Source of the DNA: Dendrobates tinctorius
Lineage: Eukaryota
Length of the DNA: 64,000 nucleotides
Assembly (NCBI RefSeq): GCF_039654945.1
Contig: NW_027361671.1
Coordinates: 98,766,001 to 98,830,000 of the forward strand
Direction of reading: 5' to 3'
Position numbers and translations under genes: made by a program. Below are positions 8,488 through 59,067 of the stretch, one piece after another (position 1 is the stretch's first letter; each line of letters starts with the position of its first letter). The notes under the pieces were generated by a model that saw nothing but the letters and a program-made list of their open reading frames with translations, ran no database searches and was not told where the DNA came from.

Positions 8488-28125
<19,638 letters not shown>

Positions 28126-29184: not shown

Positions 29185-30056
29185 CTGTGTGCGCGTGGGG
29201 GGGGGGGGGTCGCTCGCTGCGTGTGTGTGTGGGGTGGGGGGGTNNNNNNNNNNNNNNNNNNNNNNNNNNNNNNNNNNNNNNNNNNNNNNNNNNNNNNNNN
29301 NNNNNNNNNNNNNNNNNNNNNNNNNNNNNNNNNNNNNNNNNNNNNNNNNNNNNNNNNNNNNNNNNNNNNNNNGTTGGGGGGGGGGGGGGGTCTCTCGCTG
29401 CCGGTGTGTGTTGTGTTGGGGGGGGGGGGNNNNNNNNNNNNNNNNNNNNNNNNNNNNNNNNNNNNNNNNNNNNNNNNNNNNNNNNNNNNNNNNNNNNNNN
29501 NNNNNNNNNNNNNNNNNNNNNNNNNNNNNNNNNNNNNNNNNNNNNNNNNNNNNNNNNNNNNNNNNNNNNNNNNNNNNNNNNNNNNNNNNNNNNNNNNNNN
29601 NNNNNNNNNNNNNNNNNNNNNNNNNNNNNNNNNNNNNNNNNNNNNNNNNNNNNNNNNNNNNNNNNNNNNNNNNNNNNNNNNNNNNNNNNNNNNNNNNNNN
29701 NNNNNNNNNNNNNNNNNNNNNNNNNNNNNNNNNNNNNNNNNNNNNNNNNNNNNNNNNNNNNNNNNNNNNNNNNNNNNNNNNNNNNNNNNNNNNNNNNNNN
29801 NNNNNNNNNNNNNNNNNNNNNNNNNNNNNNNNNNNNNNNNNNNNNNNNNNNNNNNNNTGTGTGTGTTGGGGGGGGTCTCTCGCTGCCGGTGTGTGTGTTG
29901 GGGGGGGGGGGGGTCTCTCGCTGCCGGTGTGTGTTGGGGGGGGGGGGGGGTCTCTCGCTGCCTGTGTGTTGGGGGGGGGGGGGTCTCTCGCTGCCGGTGT
30001 GTGTTGGGGGGGGGGGGGGTCTCGCTGCTGGTGTGTGTGTGGGGGGGGGGGTCTCG
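29185..30056. repeat. Poly-G/(GT) minisatellite with assembly gaps in RPL6 intron 1
   Basis: Units gtgtgtt(g)n tctctcgctgccg flank two N runs. Confidence 0.85.
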
Positions 30057-42398: not shown

Positions 42399-43671
42399 GA
42401 TCAGCACCTAGGAGAGAGAGGAATCAATGAGGTTCTCTGTCACCTCCTTACATGCACACTATCATACAGTACAAACATACACTAAAAGGTATGTAGCGTT
42501 AACTTGCCTTAAGGGTATGTCACACTAAGCGAGATCGCTCGCGATATCGCTAAAGCGACATCGATTTTATGACGCAGCAGCGACATCGCTGACGATGTCG
42601 CTGCGTGTGACGTAGTGGCGACGTGGCCCCCGCTGCGATGTCGCTGATCGCGCACGAACGTTCAGGACCGTATTTTGATCATTGGCGTCTCGCTGGTGAG
42701 TCTGAATCGTAGTGTTTGACCCCTTTTATGAACGACGAGTGATCTCGTTGGCGACTCATATGTCAGCGGCGCAGGCGGGACTAGGTTTCATTTGTAATAA
42801 TGCCCCTCAGCACCGATTGGTGGCCCAGCAATAAATGAAAACGTCACAGTGCGTCCCCATCTATTGTTCCAGCGCGCTTGGATTACACCTACATTCTGGT
42901 CCTTTGTGCGTGCTGAGGATAGTATCGTGTGAGGCTGGTTTTGGATTCTGTCGGAGTCACAACTGCGATTCATCTTTGGCATTTCTACCATCTGGATTTG
43001 TGGATTTCCTTAGCAAGGTACATATTTGTTTTTTCCCTTTTTTACACTATTTTAACCCCTTAACGACCGCCGATACGCCTTTTAACGGCGGTAATTAAGG
43101 GTACTTAAACCACAGCGCCGTTAATTCACGGCGCTGTGATTTAAGTGAATAGCGCCCCCCAGTGTCGGATTTTCTCCGGGGTCTCGGCTGCCAGGGGTAG
43201 CTGAGACCCCAGAGAACATGAATCGGTCGGTTTTTACCGACCCCCGCTTTTGCGATCGCCGTTATTAACCCTATAACGGCGACCGCAAAAAAAAAAAAGC
43301 CGCGATTTTACATTTAATCTCTCTTTCCTCTGATGTGATCGCACATCAGAGGATAGAGAAATAGGGTCCCCGATCCCCCCGGTCCCCTCCCGGTACCTCT
43401 CCCTTGTCCTCCGTCCCCTCCCGGTGGTCCCGCGCCCGCCGGCGTCATCCGATGGGCGCCGCCATCTTGAAAATGGCGGGCGCATGCATAGTGCGCCCGC
43501 CGGGAATCTGCTGGCTCCGGCTGGCAGATTCCATTCATTATTTTGATCACTATGATAAACGATCATAGTGATCAAAATAATAAAAATAGTACATAACCCC
43601 CCCGTTTATCACCCCCTTATATAGGCACACATAATGAAATAAAAAAAATATTTTTTTTTTCAGTTTTCCAT

Positions 43672-43978
43672 AAGGGTTAGGGTTAGGCTAGGGTTAGGGT
43701 TAGGTTAGGGATAGGCTAGGGTTAGGGTTAGGCTAGGGTTAGGCTAGGGTTAGGGATAGGCTAGGGTTAGGGTTAGGCTAGGGTTAGGATAGGGTTAGGG
43801 TTAGGCTAGGGTTAGGGTTGGGCTAGGGTTAGGGTTGGGCTAGGGTTAAGGGTTAGGGTTGGGCTAGGGTTAAGGGTTATGGTTGGGCTAGGGTTAGGGC
43901 TAGGGTTGGGCTAGGGTTAGGGCGAACTAGGATTAGGGTTAGAATTAGGGATTAGGGGTGTGTTGAGGTTAGGGTTGG
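43672..43978 (+). repeat. Degenerate telomere-like array (TTAGGG/CTAGGG/TTAGG)
   Basis: Read directly from the sequence. Confidence 0.9.
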
Positions 43979-44069
43979 AGCAAGAATTGAGGGGTTTCCA
44001 CTATTTACCAACTTTGGGGGTCTAAAAATTGGGGTCTAAAAAAATCACTTTTGTGGAAATAAAAAAGAC

Positions 44070-45135
44070 TTTATTTTCACGGCTCTGCGTTTATAAACTT
44101 CTGTGACGCGCTTGGGGGTTCAAAGTGCTCACCACACATCTAGATAAGTTCCTTAGGGGGTCTAATTTCCAAAATGGGGTCACTTGTGGGGGGTTTCCAC
44201 TGTTTAGGCCCATCAGGGGCTCTGCAAACGCAACATGAATTCCGCAGACCATTCCATCAAAGTCTGCATTCCAAAATGGCACTCCTTCCCTTCCGAGCTC
44301 TCCCATGCGCCCAAACAGTGGTTCCTCCCCACATATGGGGTATCAGCGTACTCAGGACAAATCTCATAATGACTGTGGGGGTATGATTTCTCCTGTTACC
44401 CTTGTAAAAATAAAAATTTGGGCGCGAAAAGATAATTTTTGTGGAAAAAAAATGGATTTCTTATTTTCACGGCTCTACGTTATAAACTTCTGTGAAGCAC
44501 TTGAAGGTTCAAAGTGCTCACCACACATCTAGATAAGTTCCTTAGGGGGTCTAGTTTCCAAAATGGAGTCACTTGTTGGGGGTTTCCACTGTTTAGGCCC
44601 ATCAGGGGCTCTGCAAATGCAACATGATGCCCGCAGACCATTCCATCAAAGTCTGCATTCCAAAATGGCACTCCTTCCCTTCCAAGCTCTCCCATGCACC
44701 CAAACAGTGGTTCCTCCCCACATATGGGGTATCAGCGTACTCAGGACAAATCGCATAATAACTGTGGGGGTATGATTTCTCCTGTTACCCTTGTAGAAAT
44801 AAAAATTTGGGGGCGAAAAGATCATTTTTGTGGAAAAAAAATGGATTTCTTATTTTCACGGCTCTACGTTATAAACTTCTGTGAAGCACTTGAAGGTTCA
44901 AAGTGCTCACCACACATCTAGATAAGTTCCTTAATGGGTCTAGTTTCCAAAATGGGGTCACTTGTTGGAGTTTTCCACTGTTTAGGTACATTAAGGGCTC
45001 TCCGAACGCAACATGGTATCCGATCTTAATTCCAGCCAATTCTGCGTTGAAAAAGTCAAACGGTGCTCCATCCCTTGCGAGCTCTGCCGTGTGCTGAAAA
45101 AGGGGTTTACCCCCACATATGGGGTATCGGCGTAT
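44070..45135. repeat. ~390 bp tandem repeat, about 2.7 copies
   Basis: ttttcacggctct...tataaacttctgtga recurs at 44074, 44464 and 44853. Confidence 0.88.
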
Positions 45136-46030
45136 TCAGGAGAAATTGTACAACAAATTTTGTGGTTGATTTTCTCTTTTAACACTTGTGAAAATAAAAA
45201 AAATTGGTTCTGAAGTAATTTTTTTCCAAAAAAAAGTTAAATGTTAATTTTTTCCATCCACATTGCTTTCGTTCCTGTGAAGCACTTAAAGGGTTAATAA
45301 ACTTCTTGAATGTGGTTTTGAGCACCTTGAGGGGTATAGTTTTTAGAATGGTGCCACTTTTGGGTATTTTCTGTCATGTACACCCCTCAAAATAACTTTA
45401 AATATGATGTGGTCCCTAAAAAAAATGGCTTTGTAAATTTTGTTGTAAAAATGAGAAATCGCTGGTCAACTTTTAACCCTTATAACTTCCTAACAAAAAA
45501 ATATTTTGCTTCCAAAATTGTGCTGATGTAAAGTAGACATGTGGGAAATGTTATTTATTAAGAAATTTATGTGACACATCTCTCTGATTTAAGGGCATAA
45601 AAATTTAAAATTTTAAAATTGCAAAATTTTAAAATTTTTTGCCATATTTCTGTTTTTTTCATAAACACAAGACTTATCGAAGAAATTTTACCACTAACAT
45701 GAAGTACAATATGTCACGAAAAAACAATCTCAGAATCAGCAGGATCCATTAAAGCGTTCCAGAGTTATAACCTCATAAAGGGACAGTGGTCAGAATTGTA
45801 AAAATTGGCCTGGTCATTAAGCTGCAAACTGGCTCTGTCGCTAAGGGGTTAATCTTATTACACTTTGTTATATCTACTGTATTTTCTTTTAGCAGTGCAC
45901 ACCGCATCTATTTTTTGATTTTTGTTGCTTTGTGAGTAAATCTTTTTGTAATATTTGATCCTCTATAACATTTTTTTTTAAAACTTTCTAAATAACTTTT
46001 CTATTCCTTTTACCGGGCAGGTTGCACATA

Positions 46031-47671
46031 ATGTACATGTCCACCGCGGAGCATGTGATTGTGGCAGCAGCTTTACTGATGGAGGGAGATCGACAAGAAG
46101 AGGCGTGGGCGGAACAGAGGCGCTCCAAACGAAAGCGTCGCATGTGGACCAGAGAATGGCTTGAGCAGCGGTCCAAATTCACCCACATGCATCTAGTGAG
46201 GGAGTTACAGGAGAAGAATCCGCAGGATTTCCGCAATTATCTACGGATGTCGGAGGATTCATTTAGGCTGAGTGCAGACGGAGTTTTGAGCCCTGCGGAT
46301 TTTTCCGTGCAGAATGGAAGAAAACCGCAGGTCAAATGACCTGCATTTTTCCTGCGGATTTCTTCCATTTTTCACGCGGTTTTCATGCGGTTTTTGTGCG
46401 GTTTTCCATTGCGGTCTTCCCCCTGCGGATTTGGTAACAGGGGAGATAGAAAACCGCACAAAAGAAGTAACATGCTGCGGATTTTGTACCGCAGGAAAAC
46501 CGCGCGGAAAAATCTGCAGCGTCTGCACAGCGTTTTTTTTTTTTTCATTCATTTTAAAGGTACTGTACATCACAATGCGGATATGCAACGTTTCTGCGCA
46601 GTAAAATCCGCTGCGGAAACGCTGCAAATCTGCATCGTGTGCACATGGCCTTAAGCTCCTACTGGAATGTGTGAGGCCACTCATTGAACGGCAGGATACA
46701 CGGATGCGTGCAGCTGTTTCGGCAGAGGAACGTTTGGCTGTCACGCTCCGATTCCTGGCAACCGGACGTTCAATGAAAGACTTGCAATTTTCAGCAGCTG
46801 TTTCCCGATCACTCCTCAGCGTGTTAATCCCAGAGACATGCAACGCCATCGTCCAGAGTATACGGAGCTACATGCCTTTTCCTAAATCCGCGGCGGAATG
46901 GAAAAAAATTGCATGTGATTTTGAACGTATTTGGCAGTTCCCTAACTGTGGTGGTGCCTTGGATGGCAAACATGTGCGCATCACGCAACCAGCCAACAGC
47001 GGAAGTTATTTCTATAACTACAAGGGCTACTTCAGCGTGATCCTCATGGCCCTTGTGAACTCCAATTATGAATTTATAAACGTTGATGTTGGCATGAACG
47101 GCAGGGTTTCGGACGGAGGCGTTTTGGAGCACACAATTTTTGGTGAACGCTTGAATAACTCTGAACTGCACTTGCCAACCAACATGGACACCACCGCCAA
47201 TCTTAACTTTGTGTTTGTGGGCGATGAAGCATTCCCCCTTCATGCACATCTTGTGAAGCCGTACCCACAAAAGACTTTGACTGAGGAAAGGCGTATTTTT
47301 AATTACAGACAGTCAAGGGCACGCCGCGTTGTTGAGAATGCGTTCGGCATCATTGCCAACCGCTTCAGGGTTTTCCACACTCCAATAAACATGAAGCTGG
47401 AATCCATAGACTCCGTGGTGTTGGCCTGTTGCGTGCTGCACAATTTTTTACGACAACGCGATGCTGCAGCATACAGTCCGCCAGGCTTCATGGACTCAGA
47501 CAGCAATGGTGACGTGGTGCTCGGAGAATGGCGTGAGAATGATCCCGCTATTGCAGGACTTCGACCTGTCAATCAAGGCAGGCCCAAGGACGATGCAAAG
47601 GCCAGCCGAGATAAGTACTGCCAATACTTGGCAACGGGCCTGGTGCTGTGAGTTGGCAGCATCGGATATAG
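46031..47671 (+). pseudogene. Harbinger DDE transposase of the outer element, interrupted by a MITE
   Basis: 46031-46265 joined to 46654 onward reads ...FRNYLRMSEDSF-KLLLECVRPLIERQDTRMR..., with GALDGKH, VGDEAF and RRVVENAFG. A probable frameshift near 47630 hides the terminus NGPGAVSWQHRI*. Confidence 0.9.
46266..46650. mobile_element. Harbinger-type MITE inside the transposase CDS
   Basis: TTA|ggctgagtgcagacg...cgtgtgcacatggcc|TTA; removal restores the reading frame. Confidence 0.9.
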
Positions 47672-48086
47672 TTATGTAAAGATTGCTTGGTTATCCTGTT
47701 TAAAAGTTTGTGTTAATAAAAAAAAAAAAAACTTTCCAATTTTGTGTTGTGTTTATTCGTAGGTGTGATGGGGAGGGGGTATTAATATCGAGAAGGCAAA
47801 AAACAAGAGGGTTGAGATGGGGAGGGGCAGTACTGGGGATAACTCCAAATGAGGAGTGTGATGGTGAGGGGGGAGTTATGGGGGGAGGGCAAAAGAAGTG
47901 GTGTGATTGTAGCGGTGTGAGCAATGGGCAGAAGGAAAAATGAGGTTAAGCCCACACATATGCATCTCTGGTGCGTTCTCAAAGAGGCTGCGGGACAACG
48001 ACGCATCTGCGTACCCGTGCGCCGTGACGTCATGACGCATGTGTGGGCGGCGTTAATGCGGCCTAGAGAAAAATATTCAAAACAAT

Positions 48087-51000
48087 ATGGCTTCCAGGCG
48101 TTCTGTACCCTGGGGAGAGCCTGAGGTTCGATTCTTGATACAGGAAGTCGACGCGAGGGACTATGATTGCACCACACACGTCCGGCCCATGCTTCATAAG
48201 AAGAGGGTGTTGAAAAAAATTAAAAGAGGCCTCATGCGCAGGTTTGGTGTCGAGCGCAGTACGACGCAGATCCAGAAAAAACTCGCAGATCTGCGCTACC
48301 GCTCCAGCCAGCGCATAGCAAACATCCGGTCCGACAACCAAATTGAAGAGGGTGAGCGTTTTTGACAGGACATGAGAAAAATTTCTTTTAAGTTGTATGT
48401 TGTCTATTAACGTGTGCGTTACCGCTTCATATCTCAGATTGCACGTTCAGCATTTGGTAACTGTTCAATTGTTAACAGTTTGCAAAATGCCATGTGGTTA
48501 TGCTGGGACATAGCAATGTGTTGAAGTGAAAGTGAAAGTTAAATGAAGTTTGAATATTATTTTCCTTTTTTTTGTTGTTGTTACTTCAAAATAAACATGA
48601 GCTTGCACTGTGGAGAATAACATAAATTATTGTTATTATTGAAGTGTTCTTATTCAAATACCGGTGACGATGTAACATCTCGCAGAACAATATTCTTTTT
48701 TTTTCTTTTTTTGTTTCAATTAAAGACAGCATTTAAGGCTAATTTCACACTTGCTTTTTTCTCCAGCGCGTTTTTAGCGCAAAAAAACGCATAGAAAAAA
48801 CGCATACAAATGCATACAAACGCTGCGTTTTTTTCAAGCATTTTTATGCGCATGCAGGAAAAAAACGCAGCGTTTTTGTGCGTTTGTATGCGTTTTTTGT
48901 GCGTTTGCGTTTTTTTACAGATTTTGGAAAAAAAACCCAAAAAAGAAAAACAAACCATTCAACAACACACAAGACCAATGGGACTTCATTGTGGGTGTGG
49001 TATGTTAATATATAGACCCTGTCTACAGTATTCTTCACATTTGCTTGATTCTTCTTGTGACCATGGATCTGCGCTGGAAGAGTTTTCACTTCAACTTGGA
49101 TTTGGACATCGCGATGGCTCAGGCGTATGCAGTTGCTTGCCATGAACAAAGGAAGAGAGAGAGGCAGCGAAGACGGCAGCGGCGGCGTATGTGGATACAT
49201 CCGATTGTTGAACTCCGGGAGAGCCGTGGGGCATACCACACCCTCTACAGCGAGCTCCAGGCAAACCCGGAGAAATTTACAGATTATATCCGGATGTCCC
49301 AAGAAAGTTTCAGGGATTTGCTTGCTCGTCTCCAACAATCCATCCGGAGACAGGACACACAGCTCCGTCGTGCGATTCCTCCTGAGGAACGGCTACTGGT
49401 GACATTACGGTACGTAATATTTAAAAACCAAGGGGTGCGGTCTGATTACTTTTTTTTAAAATTTAATATTCAAAACCTTGGGTAATTAGTTTTCGTGAAT
49501 GTACTAATATTTTATTTTATAGTGTTTTAAAATAATATACATAAATATTAATTTAACTTCTTTCTCTGTTCACAGATTCCTGGCAACTGGAGAAACCCTA
49601 TCTTCACTACACTTCCAGTTCCGTATTGGAATCTCTACCTTGTCTGGAATTGTTGCGGAGACCTGCCGGGCTCTCTGGAATGTTCTTTGTCCAGAATTTA
49701 TGCCCCTGCCCACCGCTGAAAAGTGGATGGAAATTGCTGACAAATTCTGGACAGTATGCAATTTCCCCAACTGTTTGGGAGCTGTTGATGGTAAACACAT
49801 ACGGATCATCAAACCCAAAAGAACGGGATCTGAGTACTATAATTACAAAAAGTACTTTTCAATAGTACTCATGGCCATTGCGGATGCCGGATGTATGTTT
49901 GTAGCAGTGGACATTGGAGCATTTGGCCGTGGTAATGACTCACAGGCTTTTAAAAACTCAGACATGGGCCGGAGGTTGTATGGCAACCAATTTAATTTCC
50001 CTATGCCACGGCCTCTTCCTCACACCGAAGCTCCACCACTGCCCTTTGTAATGGTTGGCGATGAGGCTTTTCAAATGTGCGGAAACTTACTGAAACCCTA
50101 CTCCAGCCGGGACTTGGACCACACCAAAAAAATATTTAATTACAGGCTGACCAGGGCCAGAAGAACTGTCGAGTGTGCTTTTGGGATTCTTGTCTCCAGA
50201 TGGCGAATTCTGGGCACGGCCATTAATCTTAAACTTGAAACAGTCGATGAGGTGGTGAAGGCCTGTGTGGTTCTACATAACTTTGTGATGGCTAAAGAGC
50301 ACCCGACCTTTGAACTGGACGATGATGCTCCTAACCCATTGCCTGAATTCACTCAGCACCCTCTCAGGTCATCCGTTGAAGTTGGCCAAATGAGGGACCA
50401 ATTTGCGGCCTACTTTATTTCTGATGTAGGACGGGTGCACTGGCAAGATGAAATGGTGTAAGAATGTTTTTGTTTGTTTATGGTAATAAAAAACCTTATT
50501 TGATACCATTACTGAGTGCACTATATTTTTTAAATTCCAATTAAATAAAAAAACTTCCCATGTATAACTGAAGTTTTTGATGTTCACACACCTGGGCAGG
50601 TAAATACACATATGAGTTAAAATGCAGCATTGCTTGTCTGCGTGAAATATATTGGAACGAGCAAAGCTGCAGGCCATGAATCAGGAAACCAATTTTTTTC
50701 AAGAGAAAATTGTCGAACTAGTTGAAAAAAAAGTACGTGATTTTTTCAAAACCCAACCCCAATGAAAGTCAATGGGGAATACAAATCAGCATTGAGTGGA
50801 TGAATGTAATCAGCTCAATTCCAACTTTTATTTAAAATTGTGGTAGTGTAGAAATAGACAAGTTTCAACAGTTTGTTTTTCATGAAACCAGATTCTAGTT
50901 GGTAAAACTAGAGTTATTACACTAGGCCTTGGTATGACTATACTAGTCCGTGTTATTTCACATATGACTATACTAGGCCTTGGGTCCAGATTCTAGTTGG

Positions 51001-54000
51001 TAAAACTAGAGTTATTACACTAGGCCTTGGTATGACCATACTAGTCCATGTTATTTCACATATGACTATACTAGGCCTTGGGTCCAGATTCTAGTTGGTA
51101 AAACTAGAGTTATTACACTAGGCCTTGGTATGACTATACTAGTCCGTGTTATTTCACATATGACTATACTAGGCCTTGGGTTGGTTTTTAACATGTATTT
51201 ACCCATCAGTGTGTGTGAGCGGCGCAAACAACATTAATGAAACTTTGTAATGGTGAACCACAAATGTAAATTTATTTTTAATCACAAAAATAAACAAAAA
51301 AATTATTTTTTCCGGCGTTTGGGGGCAGATGGTTTCAATTTGGGGGTGTGCAGGGAATATGCAACACTTGCAGTTGAAGACGGTGTTTGAGGGGAAGGGG
51401 CAACAAAACTTGTGGGGGAAGGTAGTCCAGTTAAGGGAATTAAACTAGGAACACTTGGAGGAGAGGAAATCTGTTCAGGTACATTTGTTGTAATGGCATG
51501 TCGCCGTAGGCTTGTGTGCCTGGACCGACTTTGGCCCAATGCCCGCCTTGATTGATTTCGCCTTGAACTTGGGGCAAATATTGAGTGTAGGTCCCCCGTC
51601 TGCTGGGGTGGCTGCTGCTGCTGAGGTGGCTGCTGCTGCTGAGGTGGCGGCTGCTGCTGCTGAGGTGGCGGCTGCTGAGGTGGCGGCTGCTGCTGCTGAG
51701 GTGGCGGCTGCTGCTGCTGAGGTGGCTGCTGCTGCTGCTGAGGTGGCTGCTGCTGCTGCTGAGGTGGCTGCTGCTGCTGAGGTGGCTGCTGCTGCTGCTG
51801 AGGTGGCTGCTGCTGCTGCTCTTGGTTGGCAGTGCTCGTCCTTGCAGGAGGACTGGTGGCGGCAGTGATGGTCCAGGTTTGCGGAGTGGTGGTGGCAGGG
51901 CTACTACATGTTGTTGTAGCGGCAGGGCTGTTCCATGTTTGCCTAGTGGTGGCTGAGCTCCACGCATGCATGGGAGTGGCGGTGGTGCTCCAGACAGGAG
52001 CAGCGCTTGCCATGGTGGTGTCGGTGAAGTGACCAGCTGCACTCAGACTTGTGGTGGTGTAACGGTGGGTGTCCTGGCTTTGAATAGAGGTGTCCGTGCA
52101 GTGGTATGCAGCACAAGTCAGTAGTGAGGTGAAGCGAGTCAATGGTGGCACAGGTGGAAATGACACCACTGACTGCTGACCGTACCGATTATGCTGCATA
52201 GCCTGCAAGAAAGCATTGTTGCAGGCCTGCAGCACATTCAGCTGTTGCTCAGGACTAAGGTGTTCCGCCATGCCCTTTTCAATCTTACTAAAAAAATGGT
52301 GTGCTGGTCTGTTGAGGTCAGCCTCCAGACGGTCAAGGCGCTGTTCTACAGAATTGAAGCGGTGTTCAAAGTGGTTAAAACCACGTTCCATGAGTGCAAA
52401 ACCGCTTTCAACTCTGTCGGACAGCGACTTTAGGCTGGAATTAAAGGCCTCGCTCAAATGCATAAACTCGGGCAAGACATTCCTGTCCAAGGCCCTCTGC
52501 CGCTGGCGGGTAGTGCCCGCATAACCAGTGGCAGAGACCTGGGACAGGGGAACACCTGATGGCCCAGCTTCCTGGTCACCAGCTGTGTGTGTGGCTGACC
52601 TGCAAGGTGCTTCCTGGCTGTCGGATGGCTGGGACGGGTCAGAGGACGTCCGAGGAAGGACCGCTCCAGGGCCAGGTTGCAGGGTGCTGCTCCAGGTGCT
52701 GTGGAAGAAAGGAAAATCATTACTACCATGCCTTTACAAGAAGCATCAGCTGTGGATTAGAAAAACACAGATTAATAAAAATAAAAACCCAAAATTTATA
52801 ATACTTACGATCTCGTGGCAAGGACCGGTCTTAGGAACTGCAACGCATGATAGTGACGGTATCTAGTTCTGGTCCTTGACGCAGATCCACTGCGAACCTG
52901 GCCCTCAGCACGAACATCACTGTTGAAGCGGTCCTTGATCGAACGCCAACGTGTTCGGACTTTGTCCACTGTTGGGAAAAAAAAAACAGTGCCGTCAAGG
53001 ACAAGAGTCACTGCGGCACAATATAGCAATACAATACTCAAAGCAGTCACTGTAGAGCCCGATGACACTGTTGGGTTTCCTGCTAGAATATATCTAGCAC
53101 GAAACCCAACAGTGCCGTCAAGGACAACAGTCACTGCGGCACAATATAGCAATACAATACTCAAAGCAGTCACTGTAGAGCCCGATGACACTGTTGGGTT
53201 TCCTGCTAGAATATACCTAGCACGAAACCCAACAGTGCCGTCAAGGACAACAGTCACTGCGGCACAATATAGCAATACAATACTCAAAGCAGTCACTGTA
53301 GAGCCCGATGACACTGTTGGGTTTACTGCTAGAATATACCTAGCACGAAACCCAACAGTGCCGTCAAGGACAACAGTCACTGCGGCACAATATAGCAATA
53401 CAATACTCAAAGCAGTCACTGTAGAGCCCGATGACACTGTTGGGTTTCCTGCTAGAATATACCTAGCACGAAACCAAACAGTGCCGTCAAGGACAACAGT
53501 CACTGCGGCACAATACAGAGCAGGGAAATACTCACTAAACGCCTTTTTGGAGGATGCTGTGGCGCTGTCCCAGCCATCCATCAACGCTGCGGCCACCTCA
53601 TTCCATAGCCGCCGGGTCACCACATTGTCCTTGTACAGCCGGTCACGGCTGTCCCACAACGGCGCACGCTCCTGGACCAGGCTGATGAGCTGCTCATTAT
53701 CCAGGTAGACGTCTTCATCCCGTTGTGGAACCTAGACAAAACACATTCATTAGAATAATCAAATTTAAATTGAATAAAAAGTTACAAAAAAAAGAAACAT
53801 AAAAAAGAGTAAAAATAGAAGATAAAAAATAAAGAACATTACAAATCATTTGATACATACATTCCGTATCACCACCGGGACTTGGCTTCGCTGCTCCTGC
53901 TCTTCGCCCTCAGTAGTCCCGTCCGCAGAAGATGATGATGATGATGTCTTAAAAAAGTTGAAAAAAACGTAAGAGATTTGGAGTAGCAGCAGATATACTT

Positions 54001-55623
54001 ACCAGATGCACGAAAATAATCACCGCACGGTCTGCTTGCGCCAATTCCTGCCGCGATGGGGAATATTCGGATTCTGAAGACATACTGCATGTAAAAATAA
54101 TAAAAATCATTAGTACATACATAATTTAAAAGGACAGGCATATAATGTAATATACTCACATTCTTGACGCTGATAGAAGATGGGTTCCTTGGTGACTGTC
54201 TGCTCTCCAATCTGTCAGTGTAGTAGTGGCAGAGTTTTGGCAGGCACCTCCTTTATATAGACTTTTTTTTTTGACTTTAGAAGTTTATAACTAGTACAAC
54301 AAGTGGACACCACCAAAAAGAAGTAACTAGTACAACAAGTGGACACCACCAAAAAGAAGTTTATAACTAGTACAACAAGTGGAGGCTGGTTTCACATTCG
54401 CGTTAAAACAACGCTGCGCCCTGCGTCGTTAAGCCCCGCCCTGAGCCGGCTCCCTGCCCGCCCCATCCGGGATCACCGCCTACTTTCGCATTTGCACGCA
54501 TGCGATCGGCGCACCCTATCTTTAGCATAGGGTGCACAGATCATGCGCTGCCAGTGTGAAAGTAGTGTGCTGCGCACTTTTAACGATGCGCCGTGCGCGC
54601 CGAAATGCAGCATGTTGCATTTCGGCGCGCACGGCGCACCGTCAAAAGTGCGCAGCGTTGTTTTAACGCGAATGTGAAACCAGCCCACCAAAAAAACGCA
54701 GCGCTAAAAAAACGCATACATAAGCATGCCAATGCGCACATATGCGCACCCATAGACTTATAATGGGTGTCTTGCTGTAAAAAAACGCATTGCGTGCGCA
54801 TGCGTTTTTTTGAGGCAAGTCGGACGCTCAAAAAATGCAACAGGATGCATTTTGTGCGCCCGAGCGCATACCGCAAAAAAACGCATGCGCGGAAAAACGC
54901 ATACAAACGCATGTGTATGCGCACATAAGCGCATCCCATGCAAAGTATAGGGAAAAAAATCGCATGCGTTTTTTAGCGCTAAAATCCCGCAAAAAAAAAC
55001 GCAAGTGTGAAACCAGCCTAACATGCAGATTTCTATGGATTGTTTTCCCTATCTGTAGAACCACCATTACCATCAAGCCCGCCATCACAGTATGATCAAG
55101 CAGCCCCAGCATCTACGGTGGATCAAGAAGGGTCACCACCTACCCCTTTGCCCGCTTCAAGCCCATCTCCAGCATCACTCCAGGATATTGATGTGGCCTC
55201 TCCATCCGGTAAGTAAAGACATTTATTTTTAAAAATAAAATAACAAAAAAAAGGGGTTCTTAAACTTTTGTCTTTGGAAAGGATGAAGGGTTGCCATGAA
55301 AAATTTTCCTTTTTTTTTTTCTCATAGCCGTTGGTGCCAGTGCTTCGGGGTGGGCTATTAGCCCCTCCCCAGAAAGATCTGTTCCGACCCAATACCGTAA
55401 GGATAAAAACAAAAGCCATGTACCTTTTGTTTCTACTGTCTCTATAGTTGCCAGGTTTACATTTGCCTTTTCATCCACAGAAATACCCACAGCACAGGCA
55501 CTGCTGGCATCTCACCGGCGGATGAGAGCAGCTATGGCTGTCACTCTGGCAGCCATGGACGTACACGGAGTGATGCTGGAGAGGTTCTTGGCGGGTGTAC
55601 AAGAGGGTGGCAGTAGCCAGTAA
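48087..55623 (+). CDS. Third gene of the outer Harbinger: Myb/SANT-like domain protein, predicted 208 aa, 4 exons
   Basis: Exons 48087-48351, 55059-55208, 55328-55396 and 55481-55623, all GT-AG and phase 1, with no stops. N-terminus W.E.EVRFLI...RSTTQIQKKLADLRYR, then a Pro/Ser linker and a predicted helical C-terminus. Confidence 0.7.
49063..50461 (+). CDS. Harbinger DDE transposase (HARBI1/ALP1-like family), 410 aa, one intron
   Basis: Exons 49063-49409 and 49576-50461 (CG|gtacgt...cacag|A). Motifs EERLLVTLRFLATG, GAVDGKH, VGDEAF and RRTVECAFG. AATAAA at 50485. Confidence 0.92.
50888..51181. repeat. 98 bp tandem repeat x3 between the convergent inner genes
   Basis: ccagattctagttgg recurs at 50888, 50986 and 51084. 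Confidence 0.92.
51303..54083 (-). CDS. MADF/Myb-like partner protein of the inner Harbinger, predicted 639 aa
   Basis: Exons 54083-54003, 53947-53861, 53731-53536, 52968-52809 and 52698-51303. LISLVQERAPLWDSRDRLYKD...LWNEVA...VRTRWRSIKDRF...LQFL; polyQ/P tract; C-terminal PKRRKK; TATA-like tatataaa near 54255. Confidence 0.82.
52985..53515. repeat. 120 bp tandem repeat x~4.4, each unit containing a long palindrome
   Basis: Each unit contains cactgttgggtttc-c-tgctag-aatatat/c-ctagca-c-gaaacccaacagtg. Confidence 0.92.
54384..54685. mobile_element. Harbinger-type MITE in the right subterminal region of the inner element
   Basis: Long TIR ggctggtttcacattcgcgttaaaacaacgctgcgc and its inverse; related to 36446-36884. 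Confidence 0.85.
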
Positions 55624-55947
55624 ATTTTTTTATTTTTTTTTTAGGTTTATTTATGTTTTTTTGTTAAACCCCCTTGTTTCTGATGTTGTTAAAGATGTAA
55701 AAAAACATATTTTCAAAATATATAAGAAATTAAATTTTTTATATTTTCTGATGATATATGTGGCTGGATATTATTTTTAGTAAAAGATGTTCATGTGCAC
55801 AGCCATCTTTTAAGTGTTGTTAACCACAATGTTCTAATAACAAACAAAGGCAAGAAAACGACACCACAATTCATGTAAAATATAACATTTTTATTGAAAT
55901 AAACTTTAACAATTTTAAAAATTAAAAATATATACAAAACAAAATTT

Positions 55948-57174
55948 TTATAAAAAAAAATTTGCACAACTACAATTGTAAAAATATGGATCTTTTTCAT
56001 TTACACGGTGCCTAGGCGGAGTTAAATAAAAAGGTGCAGGAACATGGCCTTGGTTCGGCGGATGCTCCCTCCACATTGTAGGCTCTGGAGTCTCAGGATT
56101 CTGCGGCCAAGCGTTTTGGGGGTACTGACGTCTGTCCATGAACGCTGTTGTGTCTGTAAGTTTCCCCATTGCGGCTTCAATCAAAACTTGTAGCATAAGC
56201 CTTTCTGCATGGAGACTCTGAACTGGGTCTAGTGTTGGCAGTTTTTCATTTGCATAGAACGCAAAGCCGGTCAGGTTCTGAGGTGTAGTTAAAACTTTTT
56301 TTGCCAGTTCAATAAATTGTGGTGTCTCCGAGGTGGGGGCCTTCCTTTTGCGCCCGGAAAATGTCAGTTGCCTCGGCACAGAGGCGGATGGTGCAGATGG
56401 GGATGGTGTCTCTGTTTCCTCCTCTTGCGCCGTAGTTGCGAAGCTGTGTTGCTCTGGCGTGATTATGGGTGTAGAAATGCCAGCCTCTTCTGTGTCCTAT
56501 GGGAACAGAAAATACATGTTACATCACAAGCAAAAGAAATATACCTTCACAGTGTAACAGCCAAATACAGCTACAAGTTTGATAAAGGGGGTTGTATCAA
56601 TGGTTATTATATGTCCTTCAACGGTATGTCAAATAGGTAGGCATCTAACGTAAAGCTAGATCAATTATCAATAGGTTAAGGGATAACGTCTGCTATTGTG
56701 TCAATGTTTCCTTAATTATTCACAAATTCTATTCCTAATGGCCACGTACATTACTATGAGTTGTACAATTAAGGTACTTACATCACCGACAGGGGAGTCA
56801 TGCTGGATCAATGGGTCTGGGGCCAAGATAGATGCCATTTTTCTTGGTACTTCTTGGTCCCTTGTGAAACAGAGAAGTTCGAAGTACCAAAGTTGCGGCA
56901 CATAAACATCCTCCGACCCCGCTCCTGACTTGCTTGAATTCTCGACTTTGTTCACTTCTTTTCGGTACACTGTGCGTATGGCCTGAATCCTTTTTTTAAC
57001 CGATGCTTCATCCGCTGGCTCATTGGGGTAATGTTGTTTTGAAAGGTCGACGAGTTTTTGGTAGGCCTCCTTTTTAAGTCGGTTACTATAATCAGCCGAC
57101 TTTATTCTCCATAAGCATGGCATCGTGCGGTACATCTCTATGAAGTCCCGCAGGAATTCGTGCTTATCAGCCAT
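55948..57174 (-). CDS. MADF-domain protein of the outer Harbinger, predicted 313 aa
   Basis: Exons 57174-56782 and 56496-55948 (phase 0, GT-AG). FIEMYRTMPCLWRIKSADYSNR..KEAYQKL...VKKRIQAIRTVYRKE...KSGAGSEDVYVPQLWYFELLCF; RKRK basic motif; BESS-like helical segment. Confidence 0.85.
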
Positions 57175-59067
57175 CTGTAATAATGAAAGGATAATGTTAA
57201 AATGGCACAATACTACTAGAAACATTTGTTTTATTAAAAATTATGATAAATTAAAATGCGTACATTACCAACAACTTATAACACAGCTAGGATCATAAAA
57301 TGGCGGAGGTGGGCACGGCTGAAACTAAAATGGCTGCCTGCCATTAACATGGCCCAACAACACAGTAATGGTGGGCGCGGCAGAAAAAAAAAGGTCCAAG
57401 ATAGATGTGATAGCGGAGGGCGGTGGAAGGAAAACTACCAAGGCTGCTGTTTATTAAACAGATATAAATATAAATATTAAACATAACATGTAATTCAAAA
57501 ATTTTAATGACACGAAAAAATGTTAAAATAATAAAAATAAGTGCCTACCTTACAAGACTGTATGGAGATCCTGATGGAATCAATGAATCGAGGGCAAACG
57601 CAGCAGCGCCACACAATGGATCTCAGGTCATGAATCGCAGAAGGCTGGCAGGACGCAATAAAGTAACCACAGCGCTCAAGAACAATGAAAGGGAGCGCTA
57701 TTGCGTCGTCCTTTATTACTCAATCGTCCAATCACAAAGCGAGAGCTGTGACATCAACAGTCATGCCATACCGTGCCATATAGTGATGACCAATCTGGGT
57801 TGAGGGGAGTGGAAAATGATGCGCTCAATCATGCCTATCTAGGTCGGGGTCTTTAACAATACATGCTGTGTGACAGGTCCCAACGACCCCAGAGGTCGTT
57901 ATACAGATCGCTGATGTGTCGTTTATGAGATCTTCCTGTTTGGAAGCTAACTAACGATCATATAGCGATGTTCTAACGATCTCTCCCAGGTCGTGTCGTT
58001 GTCGTGATCGCTGGTGTGATCGTTTAGTGTGACAGTACCTTTAGTATGTCCTGAAGAAGGATAGTACAGCTGCCATGGATTCCCTGCAGGTTTCCTCCAC
58101 TGGGGTTTTTTCCTGCCCTGAGCGTCGCTGTATCCTCGTGAGTGATGCGAGGTAACAAACATAAACATATAACACATACACACAAATATAATAAATTTCA
58201 TTTAGTTTGTCATTCCTTTCTTTATCTGAGTCTTCTCTTGTGTAGAAGCAATGTTCTGAGAGCTGTGTCATGGTTTTGCAATAATATCATCCTTTCTGAC
58301 TATCACTGGAGAACATACTGATACTTTGTATGAGGTGGGTCTATGCTCCATAGACGTTGGGAGAGGCAACAGCAAAACTGAAGAGAAAACAAAGGAAAGT
58401 ACATACTAATAATATATTTTCTTGTATTTATATAGCACCAACATATTCCTCAGCACTTCATAATTCAACCGGTATATTAAAAGCATTTATTGCTTGTAGA
58501 ACCTCTCTGTTATGCCCAAACTACGGGCAGCAGGAAATACAGACCGCCTCCCTCATTACAGAAAGTTGTGTTAGGCCGGGATCACACTACCGTGTGTCAT
58601 GCGAGAAACTCGCACAAGTCTCTCGCATCAACACCCAGCGCAGCCGACGGCACTCAGGACCGGATCTGCGGCTGCATGTATTTCTATGCAGTCGCAGCTC
58701 TGGTCCTGGGTGCCGGTGCGCCAGGTGTTGTTGCGAGAGACTCGTGCCTTACTCTGATATCCTGTGGCGCAGAGAGAGGGGTCTGCTAGAAGGCTCCTTC
58801 GGTTTCTTCTATCCCTTTATGTAAATATGAAGAAAGCATTCCCATAGAATCATATAATGTGTAACATTAACGCCGGCGCCCCTGCATGACTCCCCTTCCA
58901 TGCAGGGACGCCGACATACCGCCCCGGCCGTGAGGCGTATTCTCCGGTGTGCTCTTTTTGTTTGTTTCCGTGTCCTGGCAACGTGCGCGCACTCCCTTGT
59001 TCTTAAAGGGGCAGCGTGCACTTGCTAAAGATGCCCCGAGCCAACAGCTGGAAGGCATCTAGTAGAA

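Follow-up and report, generated by a model that had tools for sequence, protein, structure and literature searches.

A frog lineage of Harbinger transposons that very probably carries three genes: a transposase, a MADF gene and the Myb/SANT-like gene MybL

A third gene in a frog Harbinger element

The 64,000-nucleotide stretch of Dendrobates tinctorius DNA analysed here (NCBI RefSeq assembly GCF_039654945.1, contig NW_027361671.1, positions 98,766,001 to 98,830,000; hereafter the window) contains a copy of a PIF/Harbinger transposon at positions 42512-58040. Our analysis suggests that this copy very probably belongs to a frog Harbinger lineage with three genes: a DDE_Tnp_4 transposase, a gene for a MADF-domain protein, and a Myb/SANT-like gene, MybL. 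In the literature PIF/Harbinger transposons are described as two-gene elements (PMC9710019). We found no description of a third Harbinger gene, in frogs or otherwise, in the searchable literature; Repbase and Dfam lay outside this search. The initial annotation had set an extra gene against the two-protein canon, and the window element does depart from a description of exactly two genes.

The copy is bounded by matching termini, AGGnnnTGTCACACTAA, with a TTA target-site duplication on each side. A search with the terminus pattern AGGNNNTGTCACACTAA, allowing at most one mismatch, gave two matches in the 64-kb window, both at the element ends, against an average of 0.03 in shuffled sequences. 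The two 17-bp terminal inverted repeats mismatch each other at three positions. The window copy therefore has the 3-bp TTA/TAA duplication and the short inverted repeats by which PIF/Harbinger elements are recognised. Three nested inserts lie within it (Table 1), and when each is taken out with one copy of its duplication a core of 6,059 bp is left. The initial annotation had proposed these ends, these inserts and a core of about 6.06 kb holding a DDE transposase and a four-exon Myb/SANT-like gene on the plus strand and a two-exon MADF gene on the minus strand. All of this holds. The ends and duplications of the inserts were confirmed, and the genes have Pfam matches, that of the Myb gene being below the cut-off; the four exons of the Myb gene have GT-AG borders.

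With the miniature inverted-repeat transposable element (MITE) that cuts it in two removed, the transposase is a single open reading frame (ORF) of 410 amino acids (aa). It matches Pfam DDE_Tnp_4 at 1.2e-32 over 158 of 158 profile positions, and Plant_tran at 9.5e-13. It is 77% identical to frog HARBI1-like transposases, the closest being those of dendrobatoid frogs (up to 80%), and a polyadenylation signal lies 3' of it. The MADF gene encodes 313 aa in two coding exons and matches Pfam MADF_DNA_bdg (PF10545) at 3.5e-13, with 50.1 bits against a gathering cut-off of 22 bits, over profile positions 1-83 of 84. Its ATG directly follows an AG acceptor, which suggests that the gene has an upstream non-coding exon. 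This is the second gene that defines a PIF/Harbinger element, one for a Myb/SANT/MADF protein, and it is kept in the relatives described below.

MybL, a frog gene with a predicted trihelix domain

MybL has four exons with GT-AG borders, which together give 627 nucleotides and a protein of 208 aa; a TGACGTCA site lies about 50 bp 5' of its start codon. The four-exon model from the window can be aligned over its full length with MybL proteins that were annotated independently in Anomaloglossus (P0121, P0123) and Ranitomeya variabilis, and has no lesion. Since it is only 627 nucleotides long, its open state in the window copy may be due to chance.

Within the MybL family, 10 of 13 members match Pfam Myb_DNA-bind_4 (best 2.8e-5) and 5 of 13 match Myb_DNA-bind_5, all below the cut-off. 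An AlphaFold model of the domain has four helices, with a predicted local distance difference test score (pLDDT) of 79. Among known structures it best matches the DNA-binding domain of Zeste (Z 8.0; 2.5 Å over 70 residues) and the trihelix of GT-1 from Arabidopsis (Z 6.3-6.8). Such values are middling for so small a helical domain, yet the matches are of the expected class. A Foldseek search of the PDB with the domain gave nothing at E<=0.001, the top matches being GT-1 and Zeste, and the MybL profile gave matches at chance level only against the sequences of solved structures. In the predicted fold of a full-length MybL orthologue, the DNA-binding domain is joined to a single long C-terminal helix (pLDDT about 90) by a disordered Pro/Ser-rich stretch of about 90 residues. 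The possibility that MybL is a recent duplicate of the MADF gene was also considered and is ruled out, as there is no detectable profile similarity between the two (hhalign probability 0.2%).

Searching 1.84 billion cluster representatives with the MybL profile gave 165 clusters at E<=1e-3. We looked up 30 of these; 26 have an organism name, and the 23 of them that lie outside the weakest matches are all from anurans. The genera are Xenopus, Ranitomeya, Phyllobates, Lithobates, Rana, Leptobrachium, Hyperolius, Hyla, Engystomops and Mixophyes, and a salamander and a pike protein appear only in the weak tail. As far as the searched databases show, MybL thus appears to be confined to frogs. The large database searches were made with exon-level sequences and annotated orthologues as queries. 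In frog annotation MybL goes under 'uncharacterized protein' or under misleading names, for example 'serine/arginine repetitive matrix protein 2-like'.

MybL in the Harbinger elements of other frogs

MybL adjoins the transposase in seven families besides that of the window: three in Ranitomeya imitator and the others in Anomaloglossus, Xenopus laevis, Lithobates pipiens and Hyperolius. Each of these has the full three-gene set except the Anomaloglossus locus, where no MADF gene was found in the DNA stretch examined. In four of the families the genes lie inside mapped ends or in a block common to the copies. The strand and position of MybL vary among families (Table 1). In X. laevis it lies downstream of the MADF gene and is annotated as a protein of 350-379 aa without a Pfam domain. 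A Dendropsophus locus has the transposase only, and is therefore uninformative on partner genes.

The exact terminus of the window element, TGTCACACTAA, was not found in the Ranitomeya loci, where the termini are CGTCACAC; the ends there were therefore mapped by aligning copies to one another. These termini, AGGCCCCGTCACAC and AGGTACCGTCACAC, resemble those of the window element, and two of the R. imitator families (L001 and L006) have TAA beside AGG..CGTCACAC ends. For L006 and the X. laevis locus L009 a targeted BLAST took the place of the general inverted-repeat search, which was swamped by TA microsatellites.

An alternative to a third gene of the element is that MybL is an independent insertion, either a small transposon or the partner gene of another Harbinger, that landed between the transposase and MADF genes. 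The window copy did take three other nested insertions, one of them in a MybL intron. However, no inverted repeats or duplications surround MybL in the window core, where only A/T runs pair its flanks. The order transposase-MybL-MADF is also seen in R. imitator L001/L002, and in Anomaloglossus the transposase is followed by MybL on the same strand. We regard an independent insertion as extremely improbable. The initial annotation had assigned the third gene to the element itself, and three lines of evidence now bear this out: MybL is kept in the R. imitator, Anomaloglossus, X. laevis, L. pipiens and Hyperolius loci, the two termini of the window copy belong to one family and are similar to the Ranitomeya termini, and MybL has no flanking repeats of its own.

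Some relatives differ in their finer structure. One of the R. imitator families (L003-5) has two head-to-head MybL DNA-binding exons, and recognisable downstream MybL exons are found for the minus-strand DNA-binding exon only. R. variabilis has proteins of both of these types (P0122, P0127), which are near-identical in their C-terminal half. From their sequences, the paired exons look like a diversified DNA-binding part on a common tail. In X. laevis and in a beetle element the transposase and MADF genes run on opposite strands and interlock: MADF exon 2 lies in the transposase intron, and transposase exon 2 in the MADF intron. L. pipiens has a split transposase with MADF exon 1 downstream, and MADF exon 2 was not located there. 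In the dendrobatoid relatives the two genes are separate and convergent. Long tandem arrays, with repeat units of roughly 62 bp and 220 bp, fill the MybL intron or the spacer of Ranitomeya elements (L001 12729-13429, L003 about 12548-14951), and their length varies by copy. X. tropicalis has a lone MybL (P0135, 178 aa; L016 9992-10279) inside an intron of an FCH/SH3-domain gene, and there is neither a transposase nor a MADF gene within 10 kb of it. This copy may be a remnant, or it may have been domesticated.

Selection on the three genes and their history

As pairwise dS is saturated for most pairs, we compare the proportions of nonsynonymous (pN) and synonymous (pS) differences, with Fisher tests, instead of giving omega. 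Between families, pN is 0.23-0.30 and pS 0.76-0.83 in MybL exon 1 (p 1e-10 to 3e-17), and 0.34 and 0.72 in the last MybL exon (p 2e-4). For MADF exon 1 pN is 0.24 against a pS of 0.83, and for the transposase 0.135 against 0.61. These comparisons indicate that purifying selection acted on all three genes during the divergence of the families.

Selection also bears on the possibility that MybL came from the host by capture of a gene or part of one and is carried as a passenger, as in transduplication of the Pack-MULE type, with no role for the element. The varying strand and position of MybL would fit such an origin, as would the solitary X. tropicalis copy in the intron of an unrelated gene. 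Captured fragments, however, usually decay fast, whereas MybL is kept in every examined frog element that still holds partner genes, in the window's family and seven others, and its exon 1 has a pN of only 0.23-0.30 although synonymous sites are saturated. Its exon structure and C-terminal helix are conserved, and the strong database matches include no non-frog or single-copy host orthologue. We consider it quite unlikely that MybL is such a passenger.

The trees of all three proteins have the same deep split, between dendrobatoid elements on one side and those of Xenopus and Lithobates on the other. In the transposase tree the beetle element joins Xenopus and Lithobates with 99% support in the Shimodaira-Hasegawa-like approximate likelihood ratio test (SH-aLRT), and its transposase is split by an intron as theirs are. 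The beetle locus carries a transposase and a MADF gene, and a profile search at E<=1 found no MybL there. The third nested insert of the window copy is a separate 6.3-kb Harbinger that also has two genes, a transposase (about 49045-50461, plus strand) and a MADF gene (53659-51303, minus strand). Its transposase is just 42-45% identical, which makes it a different Harbinger, and no MybL was detected in it, by profile search among other means. Since this nested element and the beetle locus carry transposase and MADF only, we infer that MADF is probably the ancestral canonical partner and that MybL was added later.

Several points weigh against a three-gene lineage with this history. MybL exon 1 reaches 24.1 bits with Pfam Myb_DNA-bind_4 (PF13837), under the gathering cut-off of 27 bits, and all three genes are known from DNA sequence alone. 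Because synonymous sites are at or near saturation, omega can only be bounded, at well below 1, and the selection comparisons include no close between-family pair. The gain of MybL in frogs is polarised by one arthropod outgroup locus, which is degenerate. The synonymous divergence of MADF and MybL exceeds that of the transposase: between L001 and the Anomaloglossus locus L007 pS is 0.75 for MybL exon 1 and 0.43 for the transposase, and between the window and L001 it is 0.83 for MADF exon 1 and 0.61 for the transposase. This could reflect exchange of the accessory genes between families and not strict co-inheritance, or it may reflect constraint on silent sites of the transposase. The defective window copy is uninformative on present activity, and Repbase or Dfam may already list MybL ORFs.

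Possible roles of MybL

Parallels for a Myb-like partner are found in known Harbinger systems. Harbinger3_DR of zebrafish has a transposase and one Myb-like protein (PMC9710019, PMC9179366). In this element, as in Ping/Pong of rice, the Myb-like protein binds both the subterminal repeats and the transposase, and the transposase needs it for nuclear localisation (PMC9710019). The frog elements share with Harbinger3_DR the superfamily of the DDE transposase, the TTA/TAA duplications of 3 bp, the short inverted repeats and a separate trihelix/Myb-like protein. They differ in that Harbinger3_DR has two genes, whereas the frog elements have two different DNA-binding partners, MADF and MybL, without profile similarity. 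For insect PIF elements with a MADF partner (PMC9710019) the transposase identity is 50-55%, and the beetle locus shares the MADF gene but lacks MybL. With HARBI1/NAIF1 and the MSANTD genes, which are domesticated vertebrate Harbinger genes (PMC9392472), MybL shares the broad Myb/SANT-like trihelix class, and one bullfrog MybL cluster is named NAIF1 by UniRef. Unlike them, MybL is multicopy inside mobile elements with inverted repeats and restricted to frogs, and the resemblance is in the DNA-binding domain only. The plant elements En/Spm, with TnpA and TnpD, and VANDAL21, with VANA, VANB and the anti-silencing VANC, are cut-and-paste elements with extra DNA-binding proteins. They belong to other superfamilies (CACTA and Mutator, respectively) and their proteins are unrelated; the analogy is functional only.

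By analogy with Harbinger3_DR and insect PIF, the MADF protein would be the one that binds subterminal repeats and either recruits the transposase or imports it. MybL would be a later addition, kept for a function on which the element depends. Pairing by way of its C-terminal helix, it would recognise another kind of subterminal motif or else connect the two ends. The subterminal repeats are of two classes. Four AGCGAnnTCGCT-type palindromes lie in the first 140 bp of the left end of the window copy, and AGCGACATCG has no copies inside the core interior. A second class, of the ACGACAACGA type, is found near the right end of the window copy and at both ends of R. imitator L006. That there are two classes would fit two DNA-binding proteins, and is only suggestive.

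A second sequence-specific DNA-binding subunit is the most likely role for MybL, and we propose it tentatively. A targeting or anti-silencing factor seems unlikely. A three-protein machinery, with MybL either as an obligatory second DNA-binding subunit or as a targeting or anti-silencing factor encoded by the element, is possible but doubtful. MybL might instead be a brake, that is, a dose regulator or repressor that competes for DNA and limits transposition, like the truncated repressors of other DNA transposons. It has a DNA-binding domain and a helix but no catalytic part, one family has two divergent DNA-binding exons, and in families that persist for long, selection can favour self-limiting regulators. 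A pure brake, however, should be lost more easily than a required subunit, yet no loss is seen in the sampled frog families, and we consider a brake somewhat unlikely. With the present data a brake and a cofactor are indistinguishable.

The two-protein model underlies the reconstructed vertebrate Harbinger, rice mPing/Ping/Pong, and the paired domestications HARBI1/NAIF1 and ALP1/ALP2. If a three-protein machinery exists, this model fails for a clade of PIF/Harbinger elements spread across frogs, and the machinery might be part of the reason why Harbinger-type MITEs have stayed active for so unusually long in the genomes of frogs. That at least five frog lineages keep a third DNA-binding gene under selection offers a natural experiment on the division of labour among partner proteins in end recognition, import into the nucleus, regulation and targeting. 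Our results also suggest that a recurrent transposon gene was missed by automated annotation.

Table 1. Features of the Harbinger copy in the window (window positions) and layouts of its relatives in other loci (positions within each locus)
Feature	Position	Strand	Remarks
Left target-site duplication	42509-42511		TTA, flank of left terminus
Left terminal inverted repeat	42512-42528	+	AGGGTATGTCACACTAA; pattern match
Left subterminal repeats	42529-42650	+	AGCGACATCG four times, both orientations, within AGCGAnnTCGCT-type palindromes; candidate protein-binding sites
Nested insert 1	43056-45848		CCCCTTA... inverted ends, TTAA duplication, non-coding
Transposase, N-terminal part	46031-46265	+	Upstream of MITE
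Nested insert 2	46266-46650		385-bp Harbinger-type MITE, GGCTGAGTGCA.../...TGCACATGGCC ends, TTA duplication
Transposase, main part (DDE_Tnp_4)	46654-47651	+	Pfam match
MybL exon 1	48087-48351	+	Predicted trihelix Myb/SANT-like DNA-binding domain
Nested insert 3	48737-55018		GGCTrrTTTCACACTTGC ends, TAA duplication; inside MybL intron 1
MybL exon 2	55059-55208	+	Pro/Ser-rich linker
MybL exon 3	55328-55396	+	GW-IS-S motif
MybL exon 4	55481-55623	+	Predicted long C-terminal helix, then stop
MADF exon 2	55948-56496	-	Conserved RKRK basic patch, BESS-like helix; 1-nt indel about 55968-55975
MADF exon 1	56782-57174	-	MADF domain; Pfam match
Right terminal inverted repeat	58024-58040	-	AGGTACTGTCACACTAA, given reverse-complemented; pattern match
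Right target-site duplication	58041-58043		TTA, flank of right terminus
R. imitator L001/L002			Transposase (+), MybL (+), MADF (-), order and strands as window; 98.3% alike over 7.26 kb, ends AGGCCCCGTCACAC, TAA duplication
R. imitator L003-5			Transposase, two head-to-head MybL DNA-binding exons (43% identical), MADF
L003 MybL DNA-binding exons	11175-11432; 11716-11982	-; +	Likewise in L004, L005
R. imitator L006			47-bp inverted repeats, 98% alike, around MybL (upstream of and divergent from transposase), transposase and MADF
Anomaloglossus L007			Transposase then MybL, same strand; MybL is annotated P0121
X. laevis L009/L010			Transposase (two exons), MADF and MybL in a block present on two chromosomes with 96-99.6% identity
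L. pipiens L012-15			Four copies; gene order as Xenopus
Hyperolius L017			Gene order as Xenopus
Interleaved or split transposase-MADF layouts	L009 8064-10519; L012 7092-9541; L011 8070-10568

Condition of the window copy and its nested inserts

The window copy is evidently an aged, non-autonomous PIF/Harbinger transposon, because a MITE lies in its transposase, the transposase and MADF genes carry terminal frameshifts, and the inverted repeats have diverged at three positions. The frameshift in the transposase lies near 47627-47633, about 15 codons ahead of the stop, where the conserved tail FNGPGAV-WQ... is replaced; it is deduced from the fact that this tail is still readable in another frame. 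In its relatives the MADF protein ends in Y-x-N/E-L-stop, while the window copy has YFYN followed by eight additional residues, a sign of a 1-nucleotide indel in the last codons. The initial annotation had called the element reconstructable. This is right in that excision of the inserts rejoins the transposase ORF, but it is overstated, since the transposase and MADF genes are each frameshifted at the extreme C-terminus and excision does not give a fully wild-type element. Its view that both partner ORFs remain open stands for MybL, which is free of lesions, and needs qualification for MADF, which is open but carries the indel and the extra residues.

Besides its interest as a two-gene relative, nested insert 3 contains repeats within its own MADF gene. 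An in-frame tandem repeat of 123 bp, present 4.3 times (52985-53515), splits the MADF domain and leaves the ORF open, and the second exon has a long Gln/Pro-rich microsatellite stretch (51610-51820). Elsewhere in the window there are runs of N (29244-29372 and 29430-29857), which are assembly gaps or masked stretches. Nested insert 1 looks piggyBac-like because its duplication is TTAA, unlike the 3-bp duplication of the Harbinger type. At 43673-43976 it contains an (AGGGTT)n array that resembles telomeric repeats and has about 50 units, and after this come 2.5 copies of a 389-bp unit (44049-45015).

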